Source: Macrostomum lignano (lineage: Eukaryota). Taken from it: a stretch of DNA of 64,000 nt. The notes beneath the pieces are model-generated. The model made no database searches, had not been told where the DNA came from, and was given only the letters and a program-made list of their open reading frames with translations. Below are positions 24,075 through 59,112 of this stretch, piece by piece (the first letter of the stretch is position 1; each line of letters starts with the position of its first letter). A program made the translations under genes and the position numbers. Location of the stretch: NCBI GenBank assembly GCA_002269645.1, contig NIVC01000374.1, positions 186,001 through 250,000 on the forward strand. Reading direction: 5' to 3'.

Positions 24075-25208
24075 TGTGCCGATAAAAGTTATCTCTCAGC
24101 TAATTATTTTTTATGATCTCTCAGCTTAATTTCAAATTACAAATATAGACAAACTGATCAAACTGAACGGCGCTAATTTAAAATTCTAATTTGCTAACCG
24201 CAGTAAAACAAAACAGAATTGCACGTTGCGATTACAATTTCTTGCTGATAATAAATTCAGTTAATAATTCTTTTTGCAGGACGTTTATCAATTTACTTGT
24301 AAAGCTTCTCTTGTTTGTTTTAATTTTTTCTTCTACAACGGCAGAAAGTTTGTTTAACTAAGAGTATAAGCTTTTCACAAAATGAAAATTCTAAAAATTA
24401 GCAAGTAGCATGCACTGTATTTTACTTGTACTTTTTATTTGAAAAGCAAATGTATTTTATATTATTTCAAGCATTTACTAATAAAAGAACACCACACAAT
24501 CTTCTAAATTTCTCAAATCTTTAACAGAATTTTGAATAAGATAATCTCTATGAATTTGTTTTACTAATTTAGATCTATAGATTGTTCAATACATTCTTAC
24601 CAGCTGGTTTAAATCTTACAAGTATATAAACATCATTGTTATTAGCTATTTTAGCAGAGTTTTTCTTTCTATTTTTTGTCAACGGCAGTGCCGAATTCTA
24701 AGAAATACACAATTTAAATTTATTACGTATGTGTATACAATAAATGCTTGGAAATTAAACTGTCTCGCTATTTTTAAACAATCAGAAACATTTTATTTTT
24801 TAAGATGAGAGTTAGTTTTCTTATTATTTTGCTCCACTGCCGATATGCCAATCGAGATTTCGTAGTGGCCTCTTATAATTCGCTGGCTTTAGTGATTAAT
24901 CTCTCAAGCACACAAGATACGTACGCAGGGAGCAGCTCACACAAGGTGTACAGCAACAAGCCCTGACTTGCTTTGTCACCTGTGGAACCACCGTGCCTTA
25001 AGGCTTTGACACGTGTACCGTCATGTTCATGAAAATCAGTTAAGCTAGGTTCAAATCAATCACATATCTAGATACAATGAATAGAGAAAACTCATTTTTA
25101 CTGCAGTAATAAACTTGGTTTACTGAATGTCTTTTTTAAATTAAACCTTAAAGGCATAGCCGCCCAACAGCGATCCATAGCACAGCGCCGCAGGCAGGGC
25201 ACCCGAAT

Positions 25209-25968
25209 GGGGGCCCATCACAAGCTCGAAAAGTCACATCGTCGAAAAGCATCCACCATCACAAGCTCGAAAAGTCACATCGTCGAAAAGCATCCACCAT
25301 CACAAGCTCGAAAAGTCACAAGCTCGAAAAGTCACATCGTCGAAAAGCATCCACCATCACAAGCTCGAAAAGTCACAAGCTCGAAAAGTCACATCGTCGA
25401 AAAGCATCCACCATCACAAGCTCGAAAAGTCACTTCGTCGAAAACTGACTTAGCAACCACCATCACAATCTCGAAAAATCACATCGTCGAAAAGTTTAGC
25501 AACCACCATCACAAGCTCGAAGTCACAAGCTCGAAAAATCACATCGTCGAAAAGTTTAGCAACCACCACCACAAGCTCGAAAAGTCACATCGTCGAAAAA
25601 GTAGGGTTAGGGTTCAGGGTTAGGTTAGGGGTTAGGGTTAGTGCTTGTGCCTTAGGGTAGGGTTCAGGGTTAGGTTAGGGGTTAGGGTTAGTGCTTGCGC
25701 CTTAGGGTAGGGTTCAGGGTTAGGTTAGGGGTTAGTGCTTGTTTGTGCCTTAGGTTAGGGTTAGAGTTAGAGATGGTGGTTGGTAAATCAGTTTTTGACG
25801 ATGTGACTTTTTGAGCTTGTGATGGACATGGTTGCTAAACTTTTCGACGATGTGACTTTTCGAGCTTGTGATGGTGGTTGCTAAATAAGTTTTCGATGTG
25901 ACTTTTCGAGCTTATGATGGAGCCCTGCTTTCGACGATGTGATTTTCCGAGCTTATGATGGCGACCCC
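25209..25968. mobile_element. Foldback/MITE-like element: modular inverted arms flanking a telomere-like (TTAGGG-variant) core
   Basis: Left arm of tandem CCATCACAAGCTCGAAAAGTCACATCGTCGAAAA modules (25209-25600), right arm of reverse-complement modules (25790-25968), core AGGGTTAGGGTTCAGGGTTAGG (25602-25770). Confidence 0.7.
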
Positions 25969-29985: not shown

Positions 29986-30169
29986 GTGGACGCATGCAAA
30001 ATGGGGATGGAAACGATTGCAAGTTGGGAGCTATTATAAAAGGCAAAATTTATAAGGAATCTGAAATGTCCGCATAAAATACAATGGGTAGTATCCCAGG
30101 GGGTAGGATAACCTGTTGGTGGGAAATATGGAAAGTGAAGCAGTAGGATAGGAAGACGGGATGAGGGTA

Positions 30170-41624: not shown

Positions 41625-44600
41625 ATGGCTGAGTTCAAAGGACTTTCTGTTTCGTTTGCCGTTAAACAGAAACAAGATGTTCAGAAGCAGCTTTTTTGGC
41701 CCAATTTAAAGGTAGGTAAGACTATGCTTCCACAGACAGTATAGCTGCTTTAACTAATGAACAATATCCAGTCCTTGCCTGCTTTTGCGTCGAAATTTCC
41801 ATTAAAAAGCCATCCTGACTAAGGTGAATTATTTAATAATTCAGTAACATTGTCATAGTAAGTTATAGACAAAAATTGATAGCTATCCGCACTGCAGTAT
41901 CGTTTGTTAAACTCACTGTATGCACATTTTTTAGCTAGGCCTATTGACATTAACTTTCCAAAAATGAATATTTTTATTGGGCCTATGCCAACATTTTAGA
42001 AGTGTATTGGCATTACAATTTTAACCATTAATGACAGAACAACACAATTAAAAATTTACAACAAAATAACAGAGTAGCAACTGGAGGCTAAATTTGTTTG
42101 TTTATTGTCAGTTCTGTGTCTCTAATCCAATAATGGTTAAGTAACATGCTTGGGCGCAACCTTGGGATTCACCCGGCCGTTTCTATTGGCAACACACGCA
42201 TGTAAGTTGCTATTGGCTGAGAACAGTCATGTGACTACTGTTCTGTCCAATAGCGACTTACATGCGTGTGTTGCCAATAGAAATGGCCAAGTGAATCCCA
42301 AAGTTGCGCATGTATGTTAAGTAAAGTCAGAGTTGTTAATAGTCTAATAAATAGTCTAGGTAAAAGCTACAGAGTTCATAACTAATTTTGGGCATAGATA
42401 CATTTTTTGCCAGTGCATAAATTCAAAATTGCATAATTGTTGATAGGCCTAGTCATTAAAATTAAGTTTCATGTCAAAACGTATATGTCCAATACCCATC
42501 TAACCTGTCCAAATTGAAATAATGGCCAACAGTTAGTTGCAAAATTGAAAATGCAAAAAATGAAAAATTGGAAAAAGAAAGAAAAGCAAAGAAAAAAGAG
42601 AGAAGAAAAAAGAGAGAAAAAGGAGAGAAAAGAGAAAAAGGCAAGAAAAGTCATATACAATGTGAAAATTAAGTTGCAATTGGGGGAACTAAGTTGTAAT
42701 CGAGAGGAACTTAGTCACAAATCTGGACAAAACTAAGTTGCACCAGTCAGGTTAAATTTTGAGATTAGGCAAATGTGTCAAAAGCTAAAAATATGTCACT
42801 GACACTGTAAGTATGCCGGCTATGCATATAATGAGTTTAACAAACAATTCTGTAAGATAGCCAAAGTGACATTTGGTTTCATCTTAGCTAGCTCAGTTGA
42901 TTTTGATAATTCAATTTTGTAAAAAAATACAAAACACTCAGTGCATTAAAAAAGTCATTTATAAAAAGGCAGTTGTTATTGTTACAGTAGGACTAACTAG
43001 GGCCTATACAAATATTAATAACAAAACTTTTATTTTTATAGTCACTGTATATATAAAAAGCTAAATAGCTATTTTTATAATCATAGAGAATAATTTTTTT
43101 CAATAGCAATGACTATTCATCTGGTATCGGATGAATAATATAACTATTATTTGTCTGGTACCAGATAAATAACAGTGATAAGTAGCAGCTGAGCTACATG
43201 AATTTATATATGCCACTCTGTGCATCCTATATACTAAAAATGAGTTGTTTGTTTGTACGCAATCGATTAGAGAAAAAATGGCTGGACTGATTTTCTTCGA
43301 ACTTGCACTGTTCGATCAGAAATTTTCCTGGGACGGTACATGCATCTTGGCTAAGAAATTGCTCCATGTTAAAGCGATTAAATATTCGAAAAACATGCTT
43401 TTTTGCAAAGGTCAAGCAAACTTTTCGACTTGAAATGCATTGTAAGAATGCTAGAGAAAAAACTGACTGGTTGAATTCTGATTCTGAAATAGATTACATC
43501 ATAACTGAATTGTAACTCCGACTTGAATTGCGTCACAGTATTGAAAATGCAGTGTGGAAGCGTAGCACTGCAGACTTGATTTAGATTGCGCAACAATATT
43601 GTTAACTGATACTGACTGACTGAGAAATTGATTATGTAATAACTGCCTCGTGTGATTTACTCTATGCTTGGAGTTTTGAAACTTATAATTATAAGTGCTG
43701 AATTCATGTTATCAAAATGATGAGAGCTAGCCTAGAGGTAAACAGACTGAACTGCTAAATGCAGAAACGATGGTTCAAATTTTTAGAGAGTAGAGTTTTT
43801 TTAATTAAAGCTTTTTAACGCCAAAAAAACTAAAAAAATCATAAAAGCGTCATGTAAAAAATCATAGAAGCGTCATGTAAAAAATCGTGGAAGTGTCATG
43901 TAAAAAATCGTGGAAGCATCATGTAAAAAGCATAGAAGCGTCATGTAAAAAATCATAGAAGCGTCATGTAAACAATCATAGAAGCATCATGTAAACAATC
44001 ATAGAAGCGTCATGTAAACAATCATAGAAGCGTCATATAAAAAATCGTAGAAGCGTCATGAAAAAATCATTAAAGCGTCATGTAAAAATCATAGAAGAGT
44101 CATGTAAAAAATCATAGAAGCATCGTGTAAACAATCATAGAAGCGTCATGTAAAAAATCGTAAGAGCGTAATATAAAAATCATAGAAGCGTCATTTAAAA
44201 AATCATAGAGGCGTCATATAAAAATCAAAAAAACGTCATTTAAAAAATCATAGAAGCGTCATGTAAGCAATCATAGAAGCGTCATGTAAACAATCATAGA
44301 AGCGTCATGTAAAAAATCATAGAAGCGTCATGTAAACAATCATGGAAGCGTCATGTAAACAATCATAGAAGCGTAATGTAAAAATCATAGTAGCGTCATG
44401 TAAAAAATCATAGAAGCGTCATGTAAAAAGCATAGAAGCGTCATGTAAACAATCATAGAAGCGTCATGTAAACAATCATAGAAGCGTCATGTAAAAATCA
44501 TAGAGGTGTCATGTAAAAATCATTGAAGCGTCCTGTAGAAATCGTAGAAGCGTCATGAAATAATCATAGAAGCGTCATGTAAAAAATCAAAGAAGCGTCA

Positions 44601-47600
44601 TGTAAAAAATCATAGAAGCGTCATGTAAAAAATCATAGAAGCATCGTGTAAACAATCATAGAAGCGTCATGTAAAAAATCATAGAAGCGTCATGTAAAAA
44701 ATCATAGAAGCGTCATATAAACAATCATAGAAGCGTCATGTAAACAATCATAGAAGCGTCATGTAAAAATTCATAGAAGCGTCATGTAAACAATCATGGA
44801 AGCGTCATGTAAACAATCATAGAAGAGTCATGTAAAAAATCATAGAAGCGTCATGTAAAAAGCATAGAAGCGTCATCTAAAACATCATAAAAGCGTCATG
44901 TAAAAAATCGTAGAAGCTTCATTTAAAAAATCATAGAAGCATCATATAAACAATCATAGAAGCGTCATGTAAACAATCATAGAAGCGCCATGTAAACAAT
45001 CATAGAAGCGTCATGTAAACAATCATAGAAGCGTCATATAAAAATCATAGAAGCGTCACTTAAAAAATCATAGAAGCGTCATGTAAACAATCATAGAAGC
45101 GTCATGTAAACAATCATAGAAGCGTCATGTAAAAAATCATAGAAGCGTCATGTAAACAATCATGAAAGCGTCATGTAAAAAATTATAGAAGCGTCATGCA
45201 AACAATCATAGAAGCGTCATGTAAACAATCATAGAAGCTTCATGTAAAAAATCATAGAAGCGTCATGTAAAAAATCATAGAAGCGTCATCTAAAACATCA
45301 TAAAAGTGTCATGTAAAAAATCGTAGAAGCGTCATTTAAAAAATCATAGAAGCGTCATATAAACAATCATAGAAGCGTCATGTAAACAATCATAGAAGCG
45401 CCATGTAAACAATCATAGAAGCGTCATGTAAACAATCATAGAAGCGTCATATAAAAATCATAGAAGCGTCATTTAAAAAATCATAGAAGCGTCATGTAAA
45501 CAATCATAGAAGCGTCATGTAAACAATCATAGAAGCGTCATGTAAAAAATCATAGAAGCGTCATGTAAACAATCATAGAAGCTTCATGTAAAAAATCATA
45601 GAAGCGTCATGTAAAAAATCATAGAAGCGTCATCTAAAACATCATAAAAGTGTCATGTAAAAAATCGTAGAAGCGTCATTTAAAAAATCATAGAAGCGTC
45701 ATATAAACAATCATAGAAGCGTCATGTAAACAATCATAGAAGCGCCATGTAAACAATCATAGAAGCGTCATGTAAACAATCATAGAAGCGTCATATAAAA
45801 ATCATAGAAGCGTCATTTAAAAAATCATAGAAGCGTCATGTAAACAATCATAGAAGCGTCATGTAAACAATCATAGAAGCGTCATGTAAAAAATCATAGA
45901 AGCGTCATGTAAACAATCATGGAAGCGTCATGTAAAAAATTATAGAAGCGTCATGCAAACAATCATAGAAGCGTCATGTAAACAATCATAGAAGCTTCAT
46001 GTAAAAAATCATAGAAGCGTCATGTAAAAAATCATAGAAGCGTCATCTAAAACATCATAAAAGTGTCATGTAAAAAATCGTAGAAGCGTCATTTAAAAAA
46101 TCATAGAAGCGTCATATAAACAATCATAGAAGCATCATGTAAACAATCATAGAAGCGCCATGTAAACAATCATAGAAGCGTCATGTAAACAATCATAGAA
46201 GCGTCATATAAAAATCATAGAAGCGTCATTTAAAAAATCATAGAAGCGTCATGTAAACAATCATAGAAGCGTCATGTAAACAATCATAGAAGCGTCATGT
46301 AAAAAATCATAGAAGCGTCATGTAAACAATCATGGAAGCGTCATGTAAAAATCATAGAAGAGTCATGTAAAAAATCATAGAAGAGTCATGTAAACAATCA
46401 TAGAAGCGTCATGTAAAAAATCGTAAGAGCGTAATATAAAAATCATAGAAGCGTCATTTAAAAAATCATAGAGGCGTCATATAAAAATCAAAAAACGTCA
46501 TTTAAAAAATCATAGAAGCGTCATGTAAACAATCATAGAAGCGTCATGTAAACAATCATAGAAGCGTCATGTAAAAAATCATAGAAGCGTCATGTAAACA
46601 ATCATAGAAGTGTCATGTAAAAAATCATAGAAGCGTCATGTAAATATCATAGAAGCGTCATGTAAAAATCATAGAAGCGTCATGTAAAAAATCATAGAAG
46701 CGTCATGTAAAAAATCATAGAAGCATCGTGTAAACAATCATAGAAGCGTCATGTAAAAAATCATAGAAGCGTCATGTAAAAAATCATAGAAGCGTCATCT
46801 AAAACATCATAAAAGCGTCATGTAAAAAATCGTAGAAGCGTCATTTAAAAAATCATAGAAGCGTCATATAAACAATCATAGAAGCGCCATGTAAACAATC
46901 ATAGAAGCGCCATATAAAAATCATAGAAGCATCGTGTAAACAATCATAGAAGCGTCATGTAAAAAATTGTAAGAGCGTAATATAAAAATCATAGAAGCGT
47001 CATTTAAAAAATCATAGAAGCGTCATGTAAACAATCATAGAAGCGTCATGTAAACAATCATAGAAGCGTCATGTTAAAAATCATAGAAGCGTCATGTAAA
47101 AAATCATAGAAGCGTCATGTAAACAATCATAGAAGCGTCATTTTAAAAATCATAGAAGTGTCATGTTAAAAATCATATAAGCGTCATGTAAACAATCATC
47201 AAAGCGTCATCTAAAAATCATAGAAGCGTCATGTAAAAAATCATAGAATCGTCATGAAAAAATCATAGAAGCGTCATTTAAAAACTAATGAAAGTGTCAT
47301 TTAAAAAATTAAGAAGCATCATAGTAGAATAAAAGAAGCGTCATATCAGACATGAAAGGTGTCATGGAAAAATTAAATGCAGCTATAATGCTGTGCTGGG
47401 GAGAAAAACTGAGACGTCAAGGCTCTCAGAGAATAACTGAGATTATGGGGGGGGGGTTTCTGAGATGTCAAAGCAAAAGTCAGAAGCTAATTCAAAGTTC
47501 ATGTACTTTACTCAATTTTTTTTATTGCATTCTTTGTTGGCTCGCCACGGGAGGCGCTGATATAAGAAGAGTCATGTAAAAAATAAAAGTAGCACTATGT

Positions 47601-50600
47601 ATACATAAAAGAAAAGTCATGTCGAAGTTAAAAGATTCATTTGGGAATTGCTACGATGTCAAAGCTAGGTGGAAATCGTTATAGTGCTGTGATTCTTAAA
47701 GAAGGAATCACTAAAATGTCAAGGCTTAGGGGAGAAGAATTGCTGAGATTTCAAGGCTTTAGGTTGGGTTAAAGTTAGGTTTAGGTCAGGTGTGGGTTGA
47801 GGGTTATATTTTATCAAGTTTCAAGGTTAGCAGGGGATTTTTCAGATTTCAAGGTTTATGGGCGCCATCGCTGACATGTTAAGGCTTACGGGGGGAATAG
47901 CTGAGATGTCAAGGCTCACGGGGGTATAAATGAGATTTCAAGGCTAAAGTCAGAAGCCACATGTAGTTTATTGAAAACTTTTTATTACATTATTTGATGC
48001 CTCCTCAGGGGAGGGATCGCTGATTAAAAAAGCGTAATGTAAAAAATAAAAGAAGCTTCATGTCGAAGTTAAGATATTCATTTGGGAATCCCTACGATGT
48101 CGAGGCTTGCAGGGAATCGCTATAATGCTGTAGTAGTGCTATAATGACTCTTAAAGAGAATTACTGAAATTTCAATGCTTTAGGGTTAGGTTAGGGTTAG
48201 GGTTAGAAGGTTGACAGATATTTTTAGATTTCCAAGGCTTATTGGGGGCATGGCTGAGATGTCAAGGGGGGAAGTTGATATGTTAAAGCTTGTGGGGGGG
48301 AATTACTGACATGTCAAGGCTTACAAGGTTTGATAGGAGATTTTTTAAGATTTCAAGGATACATGTAGCTTATTAAAAAAACGTGTATTGCATTTCTTTG
48401 GCTCCCCAACGGGGGGCGTAGATTGCTAGTCTTTTCTAACAAAGTATATTAGTATGATGTTAGTGTCTTCCTAATGATCAGTCAGTACTGAGTTCGAATC
48501 TGTAGTGATTACTCCATACTTTTTATTGTAACAACTCCAAGTGTTATTGTAATAACTCCAAGTATTTACTTTGGCATTTGTGTTATATAGCAGCAAATGT
48601 CATTATTAATTTTGATTGTGCTATGACTACTATTTACTATGAAACCAAAACATATCAATATGTATAGAACAAAATATAATAAAGGAAAAAATTATACAAA
48701 ACTTTTGGTATTTCGCCTATGCCCAAGTATTTTTTTGCTTTAAGTTCTAGAATTTCTAAGACATAGCACTTATCTAATCATACAAATATTTTTGGTTCTA
48801 GCCTAAAAGTGAACTATATACTACTTCTTTGAGTATTCCTTGTATTTTACAAGTTTTTATTATATATCCATATCCGTACTGTGCCAGACAAATAACTTCA
48901 CTATTATTTATCTGGTACCAAATGAATAATAGTGAAGTTATTCATCCAATACCAGATGAATAGTCACTGCCTTTTTAAATACATTATTAATTAACATTAA
49001 CAATTACATAAGTAAGATTAAACTTAAAGCTAGATAAAATTGCTTATAAGAATCCTTATACCATAGTCTGGATCATGTTGGGTGCAAGAGAAAAAATGCA
49101 AAAAACTACTAACAGTGGTGATGCTAATCTTAATTTGGTAATCTCTTTTGCTATTACTTAGAATTTGATTACAAATAATGTCAACAAATATTGTATTTAA
49201 ATTAATTTTTTTTCAAAAACAAAAACATTGATTGAGAAAGTCCTAAATATATGAACTTGGAAATTAATAAACATTTTGAATGTCTTCAAATAATAGCACA
49301 ATAAGTGTACAAAATGCTAATGCCAAACTAAAAACTTATTCTTGTGTTGAAAATTCTTGTATCTTTAACCTGCCCCTGCATTGTTCTGACTTTGTGCCTC
49401 TGACATAAGTCCTAAATTCCAAATATAGTACATCACAGTTCTGTTGAATTCCATCATTTTAGATCAACCATCAGATAATTTAATTAATTACAAGTTTGAT
49501 AAATTGGCATCAATTTCAAAAAACAGGGTGTCAAGTTGTTATTGCAGGGCCAAATCCAGGAATACAGAAATGAAAGTCAGGATACCATGTCATCTGTAAA
49601 TCACAAAAACCTAACTGATAGCAATATATAATTTATTAGAAAATTTTTTTTATGATTTTGTTTCATTTCTTGAACCTCTTAGTTATGAAATTTCAAAGTA
49701 GCTATACCTTGTGGATAGCTATAACTGCCTTAGTTTATCATATAAAAAGCTGATACTTAGCTTAAACTTGAGTTTTTTTCCTTTTTGTTTAATATCTTAA
49801 AACCTTTAGAAAGTTTAGTAAATAGCAATGCCAAAATGCCTAAATAAAAGGCCTAAGTAGGATTTAGAATTAGAATTAATTTATTGCACATATCAAGGAG
49901 CTTTTTGTTTTACTATAATTATAGCTATGGCAGTTAAAAATACAAATTCTTAATGATTAGGAAGAAGTCATCAGTGTGCCTGACTACTAAATCTATGATG
50001 CAAAAAGTCATTGAAGCATTAATCAGCATTGAAATTTCAACTTCAAATTATAATCTATATTATTATCACTACACTGCATGCACATATACTGATATTATGT
50101 CATATACATAAGTTGCAATTGCAAAAAGTGAATGGAATTAGACTTTACAAATAAATATAACTCTGCTTATTGACAGATACTTCCAAATTTTACAGTTGTT
50201 TCCCTAATTATATTTTATTACCTGTAGAATGGCCCATTCAACAAGCTTGAAGATCCAGTCTGCTGTGTCAAGTACTGCCAATCTGTGCCAAATTTCGCCG
50301 TTGCCAGTGGATTTCAGGTGTGTAATGTGTGACAATTGATATGCACTCATAGAAGAGTTGACATCCTAATAGTTATAAAATTATTGATACAGCACCTGGT
50401 TTGTTTTTTATATGGGTTTTAAATTAAATGGCATTCAGTTTAGAAAAAAGCTGCATAACAAAATGAAAGTTGATGTGTCATTACACATGGTATGCTATGG
50501 CAAAAAACCCATAGTAGTAGCAGTAGTGGAAGCAGCTCTAGTAGTAGTATAAGCAGTAGTAGTAGTATAAGCAGTAGTAGTATACGGTAGTATACGCAGT

Positions 50601-53278
50601 AGTAGTATAAGCAGTAGTAGTATAAGCAGTAGTAGTATAAGCAGTAGTAGTAGTATAAGCAGTAGTAGTAGTATAAGCAGTAGTAGTAGTAGGAGTAGTA
50701 ATAGTAGAAGCTGCAGCAGTAGGGTATGAGTAACTGGTAAAGTAGCCTACTGTTCCTACTTCTAAGTAGTATTGCAAAAAAGCAACCCCCATTTTATTCA
50801 AGGTTGAAATTCGCGACCCATCGGCCAACAATGCCGTGGTAAAGAATTTTCATAGATTCAAATCGCCAGTTCGCTCCATCGCTTATCGCGGCTTAGGCAG
50901 CGGATTAATCGCTGTTGGCGAGACCAATGGTCACCTGTCTGTGCACAGTGTTGCTATGCGGACCGAACTGCGTCATATGACTGCTCATACGGCCGCCGTA
51001 ACGGGCCTCGCTTTTCTAGCTGGCGTTGTTGGCGGCGGCTCGACTCTGTCCGCTGCGCCAAAGCTGGCCTCTTGCGCCGAAGATGGTCGCTGCCTACTGT
51101 GGGACGTGTCCGATCCTCAGGTGAGCTAATTAATGCTCAGATTCATATATAACATAGATATATACATAGATAGCCTGGATAGATAACACAGACGGTTGTG
51201 ATAAGATAATGTAGACAGGTAGATTTAGGTAGACAAGTCAGTAGATAAGGTAGACAAGTCAGGTAGATATGGTAGACAAGTCAGGTAGATAATTCAGACA
51301 GGTAGATAATGCAGAAAAGTAGAAATGGTATTAGGTAGATGAGGTAGTCAAGTCTGGTAGATAATGCAGACAGGTTGTCACAGGTAGGTAGGTAGCCAGG
51401 TAGATAAGGTAGTCAAGTCTGGTAGATAATGCAGACAGGTTGTCACAGGTAGGTAGGTAGCCAGGTAGATAAGGTAGGCCTATACATATGCAAAAAAATC
51501 GATGCAACACATGCATATATTAGTCAACGTAAATTAAAAGACAGACGAATTTATATTTCAGGGCCAACCGCTCATGGAATTCGATCTGTCATCGGCATCG
51601 AGCTCCACTTCCGTGTCCGCTCCACCTGCCGACGCCACCGCAGCAGCGATGGACAAAGCAACCGCGTTAGACGCCAGCCAGACAGACTGCAACCTGCTAG
51701 CCTGCGGCATGATCAACGGTCGGGCCTATCTATTAGATTCTAGGCAGCCTAGGCCAGCCCTAGTTCTGTCTCACGAGCACCCCGTCACCTGTGTTAGACT
51801 GGCCCCCGGCGACAATGCGCTGTACGTAGCTGGCGACTGTTGGGTGCGGGCGCTGTCGCTGCATCAAGGCGGCCGGCAGATTGCCGCTTATAGGCGGCAT
51901 CACAAACACGTCACTGATCTGGCTGTTGGACGGGGCGCTCTGCTCTCCTGCGGCTTGGATGGGCTTGTCAAGGTAAAGATCCTCAGTTGCTTGGCCTCCC
52001 ATATCCTCAGTTGCTTGGCCTCCCATATCCTCAGTTGCTTGACCTTCCAGATCCTCAGTTGCTTGACCTTCCAGATCCACAGTTGCTTGACCTTCCAGAT
52101 CCACAGTTGCTTGACCTTCCAGATCCACAGTTGCTTGACCTTCCAGATCCTCAGTTGCTTGACCTTCCAGATCCTCAGTTGCTGGGCCAGCCTCCCAGAT
52201 CCTCAGTTGCTGAGCCAGCCTCCCAGAGTGTTAGTTGCTGGACCAGCCTCCCAGAGTGTCAGTTGCTGGGCCAGCCTCCCAGAGTGTTAGTTGCTGGACC
52301 AGCCTCCCAGAGTGTCAGTTGCTGGGCCAGCCTCCCAGAGTGTTAGTTGCTGGGCCAGCCTCCCAGATCCCAAATAAAGTATCAACATGTAGATATTGTG
52401 CATCCAACACGACGTCCACCCTGCCACCGCAGGTAACTGATCTGCTGACCTATGAAGAGGTTCAAAAATACGAATACCCGAACTGCGGTCTGCTCAGCAT
52501 GGCGCTCTCGCCCGGCGAGGCCGACTGTCTGGTCTTGGGCACGAACGATCGCTGGCTGTTAACTCGGCGTTACGAATCGCCGGCCGCAGCCGCCGAGGCC
52601 GCGGAGGCGGCGAAGTCGATGTCGGCCGCGATGAAAGATCCCTATTTGAAAGCGGTGAAGGCTTATCAGGTGGGAGCTAAACATCAGTAACTAATTAGCT
52701 GACGAGGCTACTTTGGTTCGTTCAAATTTACTCCCGCCGTCTACCTAACCTCCCAGGTAATGCCAGCCCGACCAGAAGACGTGGTCGCCCCGGGCCCGGG
52801 TAGATCTCGCCGGCCTCGTCAGCAGCTGGATCAGTTGGATCGATTATTGAAAAAATTTCGTCACTCCGACGCTTTAAGTCACGTGATATCCAAAGGCCAG
52901 CTCAAGCGTAAGCCTCAACAAGCGGCCGCAGCAATGCGAGAACTGGCTAGACGAGGCGCCCTGGCCACCGCTCTGGCTGGTAGGCCCGATGTCCACGTTG
53001 CCGCCCTGTTGAAATTTGTACTTCACAGTCTGGGCAACCAGGACATGGCCGAGGACGCCCTGCCACTGGCTAGCGATCTAATTGAAATCTACGCCGCGCC
53101 TAGGGAGCTCCGGGCTCGACCAGGAATTCGACCGCTGTTTGAACGCCTTCGAGCACTTTTAGCTAGGGAAATCGAATTGGGGAAACAGTCGGCTATGTGT
53201 CTGGGACGGGTTGGCCTGCTGCTTGATACGTCTGCTGCTGCTGGGGGCCTGGCTGGCTCCGGGGGTGCCGCTCTGTGA
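41625..53278 (+). CDS. UTP15: U3 snoRNA-associated protein 15 (WD40 plus C-terminal UTP15 domain), 6 coding exons
   Basis: join(41625-41711,50228-50317,50803-51120,51562-51972,52433-52669,52757-53278); all phase 0 and GT-AG. Motifs MAEFK...QLFWPNLK, KNFHRFK, HEHPV, RHHKHVT...LLSCGLDGLVK, LDRLLKKFRHSDAL, MRELARRGALATALAGR match UTP15. Confidence 0.9.
42145..42316. mobile_element. 172-bp hairpin MITE with 8-bp TSD (TTAAGTAA)
   Basis: Near-complete palindrome (GCGCAACCTTGGGATTCAC...TTTCTATTGGCAACACACGCATGTAAGT / reverse complement). TTAAGTAA at 42137-42144 and 42317-42324; CA...TG ends. Confidence 0.85.
43850..47340. repeat. 3.5-kb ~22-bp minisatellite (AATCATAGAAGCGTCATGTAAA[A/C])n in UTP15 intron 1
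   Basis: Long tandem array with repeated higher-order variant blocks. Confidence 0.95.
47400..48420. repeat. Diverged ~470-bp tandem duplication of a dispersed repeat with TTAGGG-like patches
   Basis: The block AAAGTCAGAAGC...TCATGTCGAAGTTAA...TTCATTTGGGAAT...CTACGATGTC occurs twice (~47476 and ~47947); GGTTAGGGTTAGGGTTAG at 48188-48206. Confidence 0.65.
50510..50712. repeat. (AGT)-rich low-complexity repeat in UTP15 intron 2
   Basis: Direct observation. Confidence 0.85.
51976..52370. repeat. 21/42-bp minisatellite in UTP15 intron 4
   Basis: GATCCTCAGTTGCTTGACCTTCCA-type units grading into GGCCAGCCTCCCAGAGTGTCAGTTGCTG-type units. Confidence 0.9.
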
Positions 53279-54105: not shown

Positions 54106-57100
54106 ATGAGCAGCAGTAGCAATCAGCAGCAGCCTGTATTGACAGCCAGTCAGTTATTAAAGCGTCCATCAGTGTTGGTTCAGCCAACCTCGATGTCTGT
54201 TACCTCAACAGCAGCAGCTTCAAAGTCATCTGCTTCGGCTAATTTCGTTACTACTGGCAAGCGGCTCCGGCTGCATCGTCTTGGCGATGCTGCGGCTGAC
54301 TCGCCTCCTCCTGTTGTTGAATCATCGCCTGGCGCGTCAATCATCCAGCATCAGCAGCAGCAGCTTCATCATACTGTTGATAATAACGGCGGCAATGTAG
54401 GCGATGATCATCAGGGAGTCTTGCCAGCCGAAATCATTGTCGGCAATCATAATTCTACCGACGATAATAGCGTCAAAGATGATGAGCATGAAGACGACGT
54501 TCTTGCCGATGTGCTTGGAGTTGCTAGGCAGCAGCGCAGTGGTGGCGGCCGCAGTCGTCGGTCAGTTGTTGAAAACAACGGCCAGGACGTTCTGCTAACC
54601 AACGCTTCGTCGTCTACAACGGCCAAGAACGGCGCCGTTGTTAAAAGCCTGCCATCGAATCCTAGGCGGACTGTCACCGTGCGACTCGCTAGACCGTCGG
54701 CTACTTCGCCAACAACCACAGTGGTCGTATCGCCGACATCAGCAGCAGCGACTTCGATCAGCATTGGCGGCCAGATGGACGACGATGTCATTGTCGACGA
54801 TGAGGTTCTTGACGATGACAATGAAGATGTTGATGACGAAGATGCCATCGTTGGCCAACTGTTGTCGGCTGCAGCCGCTTCCACAGCTTCATCCTTATCG
54901 CCGACATCGTCTACTTGGACTCCGACAGCGTCGAATTCTTCGGCGACAAATTCTTCAACTGTTTGCTGCTCGGTGTGCGGCACCAATCGTCGAGTTAATT
55001 TGCACTACGGCGTGCACGCCTGCGAAAGTTGTCGGAATTTTTTCAAACGAGCTCTGGCTAATAATCAGCAATCGTCTGTGTCGGACGTCGGCGGCTCGTT
55101 GTCGCCTCCGACGCGTCTAGTCTGCGTACGCGGCGGCAATCAGTGCGACGTGACGCCGAATAATCGGTCGGATTGTAAAGCCTGTCGATTGCGCAAGTGC
55201 CTGGCTGTTGGCATGAGCCGAGAGTCGTGCAAACTGGGCCGTAGACCGCTGGCTGCTCAGACGGAGACAACAGTAGCCGTAGGCGATGATTCGCTTAATA
55301 GGGCCAGGGCGCTGTCGGATTTGCAGCTGCAGGAGGCCTTGCAACAGGCTAGGGCTGAGGACAGAGTGAGTTTTTAGCTTCTAAATATGAAAGAGCGTAG
55401 CTAATAGCTGTCTAATAAAATGCATTCGACTTTAAAACATTGCGCGATAATTAGGACTACAGGGAATAAAAAGATTAAAAGACAATCGGGTGGCAGATTT
55501 GGGGACTGATAGTAAATAAGGTGGCTGAGCTGGAAGACTAAGGGAGAGGCGGATGTTGGAAACTAGGGAACCATGGGAGAGGCGGATGTTGGAAACTAAG
55601 GGACTATGGGAGAGGCTGATGTTGGAAACTAAAGGACCATGGGAGAGGCTGATGTTGGAAACTAAGGGACCATGGGAGAGGCTGATGTTGGAAACTAAAG
55701 GACCATGGGAGAGGCTGATGTTGGAAACTAAGGGACCATGGGAGAGGCTGATGTTGGAAACTAAGGGACCATGGGAGAGGCTGATGTTGGAAACTAAGGG
55801 ACCATGGGAGAGGCTGATGTTGGAAACCAAGGGACCATGGGAGAGAGTTTTAGTTCAAAAAGTATTCATTCATATGCTGTAAATATAATTACCATTCAAC
55901 CCAACACTCAGGTCCTTCACCGTCGAGTAGTACTCAAGACGTCGCCGCATCAGCCAGCCAGTGCCAGCAGTTTCGCTGTTCCATCGTCAAGCAGCGCTTC
56001 AACTGTTGGTTTAGCATCTCCGCCAGCCATTGAGATCATCCGCGATCTGACAACGCAGCAGCCTGCAGCCTCTAGCGAAGAGTTTCAACAGTTGAAATCG
56101 TCTCTCATTGATCAGTGCCAGCAATTGGCTGGCGGAAATCGAACACGCGACTCGATTGGTCAGCTGATTCGCCAATTGTCACCGGCTGTGTTGCGATCAG
56201 TTGAACAGCGAAACCTGGCTGGTCGGGCCCAGTTCTGCGCCCAGCTAATTCGAGTTTCGGGAAATCTATCAGGTAACAAGCAGCAGCAACAACAGCAACA
56301 ACAACAGCAACAAGATGCATCCGTTGTTGTCGCCTCCGAGGTTGTTCGCGAAGAGGTTGTCCGTAATGAATCCGACACAGATTCTGATGTTGAACAGGCG
56401 TCTTATGGTCAGCGTCAGCAGCAGCAGCAGCAGCAGAACCAGAAACAACCTCAGTTGCCATCTGCCACAAAGATTAAGCTTGCTCCCCAAGGTACTCAGC
56501 AGCCTCAATCTGCATCAACTCCAGCTGTGACAGCCAGTCGGTCTCAAACTCGAACTCAACTAACTCGCCAGTGTCACTCAATAGCCGACGAGGACTTTAA
56601 AATCCTACCAGTTCAACGAGAGTACTGCCGCGATTTGCTAAGCGAAATGATTCAACAATTGGAAGATCCCGTGTTGGACTCGGTGCTTCGAAGGCGTCAG
56701 GCCAGAGATAGACTCTGTCGCGAATTAGTGAAGATCTCCTTGGAGATTATGGCATCCGGGCGGACGGCTAGGAATCTTGTACCGTTTGGCTATTCGCCAA
56801 CGTCCATTGTTGAACAGTTGCAATTGTACTTTAAAATCGTATTCGGCCCGGACATGCTGCAGGAGATTGTGCAATCGTCGCAGGACTTGAAAAACACTCC
56901 ACCTCAGATGGACTCGACCGAGAATTTTCGCGATTATTTGTGGAATCTGTACGTGTTCCGAATGAACTTTATCCTGTCCAAGGTGTGCGATTTTGCTATT
57001 AAATTTGGAGAATTTCAATCATTGTCAACCGCGGATCGCTGCCAGATTGTGTTGAACTGTTTCAAAGCTGCCGCCATTCTGATCCACTCCCAATTTTGGG

Positions 57101-57866
57101 TGGTGTCGCCTGCCTGCTACCTGCTAGTGCAAGATCGCAGTCTCAGTCTGGCCGATATGAAGGCTCATTTCTTGTACGGCGAAGAGTTTGTCAGGCTGTC
57201 GTTCGAGTTCACTAAGGATCTGGTTGAGCTCCGGCTCAAAGAGGAAGAATTCGTCATCTTTCTCACTTTGGTTATCTTCTTCTTTGGTGAGCGAGGCTTT
57301 GTCTGTTGCTTGCTTTTTTTAACTGACCGTCTGAGGACTAAAAACTATCTTAGATTCTATTTAGCCGTCTATATTCTATCCTATAGATTCTATCCACCCC
57401 TGTTTATCTATCACATCAACTTTGCACAATTTTACATTTATTATAGTAGATAGAAGAAAGGTTTACTTATTCGTTACTATCAGTAGACTAGCATGAGAAT
57501 ATGCTAGCTTAAATGTGTTATTCATTGCACCCCTACCACACAGACACAGGCAGCAGCCTATCACCGCCGGACCTATCCGGCCGGGGCATTCTAACCAACA
57601 TGCGCAGGCAGCTGTTCTCAAAACTCGAACGAGTTGTTGGCCAGCAGCGTCGCTACCTTCGCGTACTGCAACTTTGGCGCTCATTGAAAAAGCTAGTCAC
57701 CGAGGAGGACAAATGCGTCGGCAATTCGGCTAGTAAAATAGTTGATAAGTGTTTGCAGCACTATAATAGCGGCTCGGATAATGCCAATGCGATTCGACTG
57801 TATCCGGATCTGTTTTTAACTAAACAGACACATCTAGTGCAGATCTGGCTGTCTGGCAAGAAGTGA
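54106..57866 (+). CDS. Divergent nuclear hormone receptor (C4 zinc-finger DBD plus LBD), 3 exons, with a possible alternative 4th exon at 58161-58338
   Basis: join(54106-55365,55912-57286,57544-57866); phases 0 and 1 are consistent. DBD CSVCG...HYGVHACESCRNFFKR...CVRGGNQC...RSDCKACRLRKCLAVGM plus SRESCKLGRRP extension. LBD signature VCDFAIKFGEFQSLSTADRCQIV; LRLKEEEFVIFLTLVIFFFD. Confidence 0.88.
55548..55845. repeat. 33-bp minisatellite in nuclear-receptor intron 1
   Basis: (GGGAGAGGCTGATGTTGGAAACTAAGGGACCAT)n, about 9 copies. Confidence 0.95.
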
Positions 57867-57947
57867 AAGTTTAAATCGACGAGCCTCGAGACTGTAATCT
57901 AAGCAACGTTGTTATTAACTGCTCTCATCATAAACATAACCACAGAT

Positions 57948-58478
57948 CAGTGGTGTGATTCAGGCGCGAATTCGCGCCAGGCGCGAAAATGGCGCGAATG
58001 CGCGAATCCTGGGGGTCTGGCGCGAAATTTTGTGGAACCATGGGCGCGAAAATTGCATTCTTATTTTCTGCTTTTTACACTTATTCTCTTGTCAGACAGT
58101 ATGAAATACAAGAATGTCATAGCTTAGGAGATTAATCTAACAAACTGAGTTCAATCTCAGGCGTCAGCAGCAGAATGTGCAGAAGAAGAAGCAGAAGGAG
58201 GCAGAGAAGCTAGCTGAGCTCGTCTTAAAGCGCAAGGCTGCTGAGCTGCTGTCAACGTCGTCAATCACCAGCACGAGCAGTCGTCTGCCTGCAGACATCG
58301 CCAACAAGAAGTTCAGGGGGGACACGGCTGTGACTTAAGAGACATGCTAATTGGTAGCCAGACGCATCTTCAAAAGTGTCATCAATTGACTTATTTGGCT
58401 GTCAGTAGAATATTATTGGCATGGCGCGAAAATTTTCAGTCGGCGCGAAATTTGGCAAACTTTCCAATCACACCACTG
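57948..58478. mobile_element. 531-bp hAT-like non-autonomous element with perfect 13-bp TIR and 8-bp TSD
   Basis: TIR CAGTGGTGTGATT (57948-57960) / AATCACACCACTG (58466-58478). TSD CCACAGAT at 57940-57947 and 58479-58486. Clustered subterminal GGCGCGAA motifs at both ends. Confidence 0.9.
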
Positions 58479-58479
58479 C

Positions 58480-59112
58480 CACAGATCCTAAAATAACTGG
58501 TTCGGCCTCTGAGGCATATAATGCTTAGTAAACAGTTATCTACATTCAGTTCAGTAAAAATGAAGAATAAAATGAAGAAAAAAGGCAGTTAAATGGCTTG
58601 ATAGACGTGAATAAACAACTTGCTATTTAGCTTCAGTCATAATATACATTTAGCCACGGCCATTGAGAATGTACATTATAGTTTTAGGCGGGAACACAGA
58701 GGAAGGCAATCAAAATTGGGGGGTAGAGATTCTGTACGCCACCGGAGGGGTTTAGCTAGGCGGGGCACTGAAATGTACAGTAGATAACGGTTTTGGGCTG
58801 AAACAGTGAAGGCAATAAAAATTGGGCGGGGGGTAGAGATTTTGGGTGGAACGATGCGACCGAAGGGGTACAGTTGTGGGTGGGAGTGGGAGCACTAAAA
58901 ATGTACATAGCAGTAGCTTTGGCCAGGAACCGAGGAAGGCGATAAAAATTTGGGGGGAATAGGGGCGGGGGTAGAGTTTTTGTGTGGAACGACGCGGCGG
59001 GGGTAAGAGAACCATAATAAAGTGTATTTGAATAAATGCTTTTCTATTGTACTGAAAGTAGCTTACGCGCACATGTGCCGAGTGGCTAAATCTAGTTGTT
59101 TTCATGTCTCTG
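58480..59112. mobile_element. MITE family A, copy 2 (true start 57941; interrupted by the hAT-like element)
   Basis: Left end CACAGATCCTAAAATAACTGG...GAGGCATATA...CTTAGTAAA...TCAGTTCAGTA, the internal segment and right end ACTGAAAGTAGCTTACGCGCACATGTGCCGAGTGGC...ATCTAGTT are all homologous to 5464-5894. Confidence 0.75.

Follow-up and report, generated by a model that had tools for sequence, protein, structure and literature searches.

A 531-bp transposon (positions 57948–58478) lies 81 nt beyond the stop codon of a nuclear receptor gene in a 64-kb stretch of the genome of the flatworm Macrostomum lignano (assembly Mlig_3_7, NIVC01000374.1:186001–250000; hereafter, the window). The accession NIVC00000000 to which the contig belongs is the Mlig_3_7 assembly of this species (PMC5730564). 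The element has perfect 13-bp terminal inverted repeats (TIRs), is bordered by a perfect 8-bp target site duplication (TSD) and contains clustered subterminal repeats. It is probably a non-autonomous hAT element, carried as a passive passenger in the 3′ untranslated region (UTR) of a lineage-specific receptor gene.

In the model that we favor, an element which resembles a miniature inverted-repeat transposable element (MITE) or a Ds element in anatomy would have been inserted by cut-and-paste into CCACAGAT. Having no transposase of its own, it would be mobilized in trans by a hAT transposase that reads the 13-bp TIRs and that may also recognize the GGCGCGAA subterminal repeats. Once in place, the element would be passively transcribed within the receptor 3′ UTR, with the poly(A) signals just beyond it, and its interior stretch would not be spliced onto the receptor.

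Structure and superfamily assignment of the element

The window was scanned for perfect TIRs (≥11 bp) that directly adjoin a perfect 8-bp TSD, and 100 composition-preserving shuffles served as the control. One case was found in the window and none in the 100 shuffles, and the transposon signature of 57948–58478 is thus far beyond chance. The subterminal octamer GGCGCGAA has eight copies in the window, where 0.79 are expected, and none of them lies outside the element. Six are within ~100 bp of its left end and the other two within 60 bp of its right end. A preliminary description of this locus had placed the receptor stop, TSD, TIR, CTAAC, TCTCAG, the GT at 57863 and the TAA at 58336–58338, together with the 531-bp length and the 81-nt gap, and every one of these coordinates is exact.

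The sequence of the subterminal repeat also invites a separate observation. In the form GGCGCGAAA, it is the reverse complement of TTTCGCGCC, which we take to contain an E2F-type site, TTTSGCGC. The element puts eight such CpG-rich, E2F-like motifs beside the receptor gene.

The structural hallmarks of hAT families include an 8-bp TSD and YARNG termini (PMC3014272). Here, the TSD is 8 bp long, perfect and abuts the TIRs, and the TIR terminus, CAGTG, fits 5′-YARNG. In Ac/Ds, AAACGG hexamers are the subterminal, transposase-binding repeats (PMC3260210), and in the present element short repeats are likewise clustered at both ends, with GGCGCGAA in the place of AAACGG. The size is that of a MITE, namely 531 bp with TIRs and TSD and without transposase coding capacity. 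No remnant of a transposase was seen as a Pfam match at E ≤ 1, either for the 58-aa peptide of the interior or for a 72-aa open reading frame (ORF) that runs across the 5′ end of the element, and there is no transposase near the element within the window.

Because the element combines an 8-bp TSD, a YARNG terminus and subterminal repeat clusters with the absence of a transposase domain, its assignment as a non-autonomous, hAT-like transposon is structurally well supported. The name hAT-like MITE, under which it was introduced in the preliminary description, can be retained on structural grounds, the 13-bp length of the TIR and the small size of the element included. The perfect TIRs and TSDs are probably the mark of a fairly recent insertion, with which they are compatible, and the 21 positions compared set a loose bound on its age.

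Similar elements are known from several hosts. Non-autonomous hAT elements and hAT MITEs, such as maize Ds1 and Ds2, Drosophila ‘mar’ and the vertebrate MER1/Charlie-type elements, share with the one described here the 8-bp TSD, the short YARNG TIR, short subterminal repeats clustered at both ends, a length of a few hundred bp, the lack of a transposase and a site in or next to a gene. The element differs from them in its subterminal repeat, which is the CpG-rich octamer GGCGCGAA. The combined pattern of TIR and GGCGCGAA had no matches in metagenome, prokaryote-genome and viral contigs, collections that do not include flatworm genomes.

The host receptor and the position of the element in its transcript

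The host gene has the organization that defines the nuclear receptor superfamily, a DNA-binding domain (DBD) followed by a ligand-binding domain (LBD). Its exons and domains are listed in Table 1 with the parts of the element. A HMMER search of a representative set with the DBD returned 4061 nuclear receptor-type matches. The closest protein is UniProt A0A1I8GFI5, a ‘Nuclear receptor domain-containing protein’ of M. lignano with 841 aa, which is 100% identical over the DBD query. By eye, it differs from the protein of the window at three residues outside the query and is therefore an allele or a duplicate from another assembly. It shares both receptor introns, has an extra in-frame intron at 56159–56584 and ends with the identical C-terminus, ...HLVQIWLSGKK. 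A0A1I8GFI5 is the sole member of its 90%-identity cluster, and no mention of it was found in the searchable literature.

The second-best match to the receptor DBD comes from outside the species, covers the DBD only and is 44% identical. M. lignano has 61 nuclear receptors, 17 of which have atypical P-boxes and are termed ‘divergent’ (Wu & LoVerde 2021, PMC8363021). That the next-best match reaches only 44% fits this divergent group, which the host gene also resembles in its zf-C4 DBD, its atypical P-box (CESCRNFFKR) and its weakly scoring LBD.

Table 1. Positions of the element, its parts and the genes around it (window numbering)
Feature	Position	Strand	Remarks
UTP15			upstream neighbor of the receptor gene
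Divergent nuclear receptor gene	54106–57866	+	exon junctions and C-terminus as in A0A1I8GFI5
Receptor exon 1, zf-C4 DBD, P-box CESCRNFFKR	54106–55365	+	PF00105, 59.6 bits, E = 4e-16
Receptor exon 2, LBD	55912–57286	+	PF00104, 22.7 bits on exon 2 alone, just below the 23.5 cut-off
Receptor exon 3, C-terminus	57550 (or 57544)–57866	+	
Left TSD copy, 8 bp, CCACAGAT	57940–57947	.	identical to 58479–58486; abuts TIR
Left TIR, 13 bp, CAGTGGTGTGATT, begins CAGTG	57948–57960	+	100% complementary to right TIR
5′ subterminal cluster, six GGCGCGAA(A/T) and one TGCGCGAA variant	57963–58050	.	putative transposase-binding repeats
Perfect 16-bp palindrome GGCGCGAATTCGCGCC	57963–57978		inside the 5′ subterminal cluster
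AT-rich, intron-like stretch	58061–58160	+	GC 0.31; ends with CTAAC (58137–58141) and TCTCAG (58155–58160)
GC-rich open stretch, G + 58 codons RQQQNVQKKKQKEAEKLAELVLKRKAAELLSTSSITSTSSRLPADIANKKFRGDTAVT + TAA	58161–58338	+	GC 0.55; possible terminal-exon relic
3′ subterminal GGCGCGAA pair	58423–58449	+	copies at 58423–58430 and 58442–58449
Right TIR, AATCACACCACTG on the + strand	58466–58478	-	exact reverse complement of CAGTGGTGTGATT
Right TSD copy, 8 bp, CCACAGAT	58479–58486	.	abuts TIR
First two AATAAA after the receptor stop	58566–58571, 58610–58615	+	probable poly(A) signals

The last codon and the stop of the receptor ORF are AAG TGA (57861–57866), with the TGA at 57864–57866. Between 57866 and 58566 there is no AATAAA on the + strand, and the distances from the right TSD to the two at 58566 and 58610 are 80 and 124 nt; with the element removed, these hexamers would follow the stop by ~160 and 205 nt. 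As the first AATAAA after the stop lies past the element, the latter is probably located within the receptor 3′ UTR and transcribed with it.

Three further observations concern the receptor itself. The extra intron of A0A1I8GFI5 corresponds to an in-frame, 426-nt GT-AG interval of exon 2 (TTG/GTCAGC...caatag/CC; here and below, a slash within a sequence marks the splice point) that is 142 codons long and covers the poly-Q hinge. It is removed in the A0A1I8GFI5 model and open in the window, and is either an exitron-like optional intron or an artefact of gene prediction. Secondly, the last exon has tandem acceptors 6 nt apart at 57543 and 57549 (acAG/acacAG/G), both in frame, which yield ...FFFDTGSS... 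or ...FFFGSS...; A0A1I8GFI5 takes the distal one. Thirdly, an AlphaFold model of the LBD, made from the single sequence with no alignment and, at a pLDDT of 40, not trustworthy, has a helix on THLVQIWL (residues 328–335 of 339), which includes the C-terminal HLVQIWL, the putative AF-2 helix (H12).

Origin of the interior stretch and its relation to the receptor

In the preliminary description the element was said to carry a spliceable coding exon, and this claim has weak support. The frame in question (RQQQNV...DTAVT) is open for 65 codons from 58141 to a TAA at 58336–58338. From 58161 onward it has no in-frame ATG, and an independent gene was rejected for this reason. In favor of an exon, GC content rises from 0.31 (58061–58160) to 0.55 (58161–58338) with a step exactly at the AG, and falls to 0.39 past the stop. 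Codon positions 1, 2 and 3 of 58161–58338 have GC contents of 0.53, 0.41 and 0.72, and the resulting difference between the third (GC3) and the second position (GC2), 0.31, is matched by 0.6% of non-coding windows. With a codon log-odds score trained on 2,698 codons from exons of the window, this frame reaches +11.6, in the range of true coding windows (8.6 ± 6.8), and all five others are negative. However, a degenerate AAG/CAG run, the first 20 codons, accounts for 10.1 of the 11.6 units, and the last 38 codons contribute +1.6. Moreover, the longest open stretch of the element is not longer than in shuffles, 79% of which contain one of at least 65 codons. The signal for a relic exon is soft: most of the log-odds lie in the AAG/CAG run, and chance alone would give an ORF this long.

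Homology searches with the 59-aa peptide gave no relatives. Pfam contained no family for it, the hAT dimerization domain included, JGI metagenome contigs contained no relative and the PDB returned noise only (E about 5). An index of 5.8 billion proteins was also without a match, and in the same index a 340-aa query from the LBD missed the 100%-identical A0A1I8GFI5; negatives from this index are therefore weak for the window.

Whether the GC-rich stretch of ~180 nt is the relic of a terminal exon or filler DNA with a chance ORF is about evenly balanced. That the interior is non-coding filler, its ORF arising by chance and its periodicity from the degenerate AAG/CAG trinucleotide run, falls just short of an even chance. 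The frequency of such ORFs in shuffles, the concentration of the log-odds in the first 20 codons and the lack of a homologue in Pfam, the protein index, metagenome contigs and the PDB are what filler would give. The GC step exactly at the AG and the rarity of the GC3–GC2 asymmetry argue against it, as does GC3, which by hand count is still ~0.71 in the non-repetitive last 38 codons.

If the stretch is a relic, its source is either a captured host gene or the gene of the parent element. According to the first alternative, the interior (~58061–58420) of a Pack-type or filler-carrying hAT element would be genomic DNA copied from a host gene, running from an intron end through the last coding exon into the 3′ UTR. 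The layout, in which an AT-rich, intron-like stretch, an AG, a GC-rich frame with a GC3 of 0.72, a stop and again AT-rich DNA follow one another, agrees with this, as does the lack of an in-frame ATG, which is expected of a non-first exon. The peptide is, in addition, unlike the end of a hAT transposase, as the dimerization domain is absent. Ac/Ds provides the precedent (PMC3260210), and the same layout of a gene 3′ end between transposon termini is found in Pack-MULEs and, more rarely, in hAT elements such as maize Ds2-22 and Ds-l4-354 (PMC3260210). Unlike those elements, the present one has a weak coding signal, near nil (+1.6) over the last 38 codons, and it is a candidate member of the group. 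The captured host exon of the preliminary description is not borne out either, as no donor gene for the interior was found in the window, in the protein index with its doubtful sensitivity, in metagenome contigs or in the PDB. Gene capture is also described as rare in hAT elements (PMC3260210). We regard this origin as doubtful.

In the second alternative, internal deletion of an autonomous hAT element would have left a derivative with the 3′ part of the parent's own gene: the end of the last intron, the last exon and the 3′ UTR. Non-autonomous hAT elements most commonly arise as deletion derivatives, and the usual end of a hAT transposase is in the dimerization domain or directly behind it. 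The former speaks for this alternative, of which the Ds-del type is an example (PMC3260210), as do the exon-like layout and the position of the stop 140 bp from the 3′ end of the element, which is typical for the end of a transposase gene. The latter speaks against it, given that the peptide lacks the hAT C-terminal dimerization domain and any Pfam match at E ≤ 1, and no transposase relative was found in the protein index, for which the limit given above applies. A retained last exon of a transposase, as put forward in the preliminary description, thus finds no backing in the peptide, and this derivation, too, is unlikely.

The remaining question is whether the stretch is joined to the receptor. 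Transposable elements can be exonized as alternative terminal exons, Alu and MIR in mammals being examples, and the classic cases are intronic, between two exons. The present element is like these in its AG acceptor, branch-point-like motif, open frame and probably transcribed region. It differs in that a weak donor overlapping the stop codon is needed and in that the case is known from sequence alone. According to this explanation, some receptor pre-mRNAs would join the GT at 57863–57864 to the AG at 58159–58160, and the stop would be replaced by a 59-residue tail after the last helix of the LBD.

The arithmetic behind the proposed new in-frame C-terminus is correct: the GT splits the last Lys codon as AA/G and the junction 57862/58161 keeps the frame. 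The frame is then open to the TAA with a coding-like composition, the element is probably inside the transcribed 3′ UTR, and the acceptor, which follows CTAAC by 18 nt, is similar to the real acceptors of the gene, for example caacccaacactcag/G. Nevertheless, the phase match carries no weight, because this phase is shared by five of the six GTs present within the last ~90 nt around the stop, the prior for any single GT being 1/3. Acceptor sets, defined as a YAG that lies 13–40 nt after CTRAY and is followed by ≥58 open codons, number 85 in the window (0.66 per kb per strand), 14 of them with an exact CTAAC, and the signature of splice site plus ORF is not beyond chance. The proposed donor, GAA/GTGAAA, has neither G at −1 nor G at +5, unlike the three donors of the gene (AGA/GTGAGT, TTG/GTGAGC and TTG/GTCAGC), all of which have G at +5; by a generic metazoan donor matrix, it is ~3.5–4.5 bits under the first two. 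Finally, no isoform with an element-derived tail was found: the sole database protein, A0A1I8GFI5, ends with SGKK and its cluster has no other member. The receptor C-terminus is most likely ...HLVQIWLSGKK, as annotated. Exonization of the element stretch onto the receptor is unproven and, on this evidence, very unlikely. A whole family of hAT MITEs in which a branch point, an acceptor, a 59-codon frame and a stop form a ready cassette for a terminal exon, so that host genes are offered new C-termini, is less likely still.

Several points weigh against a passive hAT passenger in the receptor 3′ UTR. The hAT assignment is based on TSD length and five terminal bases. Ac, hobo and Hermes have the target consensus nTnnnnAn, and CCACAGAT fits with A at position 7 but not with C at position 2; this fit at one of two positions also sets the element apart from the hAT MITEs named above. 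The element is seen as a single copy, as neither a TIR search nor blastn gave further copies in the window. The placement in the 3′ UTR comes from AATAAA positions alone. The acceptor of the element (CTAAC, 18 nt, TCTCAG/G) matches the quality of caacccaacactcag/G and ccacacagacacag/G, the acceptors of the gene itself, and the interior peptide is unmatched in the protein index, the sensitivity of which is discussed above. With these points included, the passive passenger is still the explanation that we consider probable.

Other features of the window and implications

The Mlig_3_7 assembly is made up of repeats by more than half, with 13% tandem repeats, 3.05% DNA transposons and 180 Mb of duplicated blocks at ≥95% identity. 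The 80 rows reported for the window by Tandem Repeats Finder (TRF) fit this repeat-rich assembly. Introns and gene flanks are packed with minisatellites with units of 17–50 bp (for example, 55542–55845 and 51977–52367), several of which make long, spurious ORFs. They include an array of nine 33-bp units in receptor intron 1, and 24- and 28-bp arrays in the UTP15 gene.

A second candidate with TIR and TSD, at 43164–48912, was rejected as its ‘TSD’, TGGTACCA, forms the palindromic core within an inverted repeat of ~35 bp. The inverted repeat pair (CTATTATT..TGGTACCAGATAAATAA.AGTGA) is found at 43144–43198 and 48878–48932, 5.7 kb apart, and brackets a tandem array of 154 copies of a 23-bp unit (43833–47344). 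The pair may be the ends of a larger element. In the region 25207–25921, an interstitial, TTAGGG-like array (25602–25770) is flanked by arrays of 41–60-bp repeats (25215–25589 and 25772–25921), which appear to be oppositely oriented, head-to-head, judging by the TRF consensus units only.

The window also contains a single-exon gene for a UBE2F-type E2 of 188 aa, to which a database protein is 100% identical. Two gene products on the minus strand, starting at 29991 and 37154, have non-ATG starts, VHMFKL... and GQQAAS..., the latter by our own reading and beginning two bases after a CAG. These look like 5′-partial ORFs of transcripts that would begin at trans-splice acceptors. Pervasive spliced-leader (SL) trans-splicing is reported for M. 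lignano, and the non-ATG starts fit it. Scans of the window for Rfam families and tRNAs gave no hits.

The various readings of the element differ in what they would mean. Exonization, if true, would mean that a DNA transposon had delivered a terminal exon in a flatworm. If the cassette existed, landing in a transcribed 3′ region or an intron would supply a new C-terminus, which here would be a K/E-rich, helical tail plus an S/T-rich one, added to a divergent nuclear receptor behind its putative AF-2 helix. As a passive passenger, the insertion is a routine case, that of a non-autonomous hAT-type element in a gene's 3′ region within a repeat-rich host genome. It would have placed eight CpG-rich motifs in what is probably the receptor 3′ UTR. 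As a presence/absence marker, the insertion could help to distinguish the duplicated chromosome copies of M. lignano, and the termini CAGTGGTGTGATT and the GGCGCGAA repeats offer a handle for finding the family of the element and its transposase.

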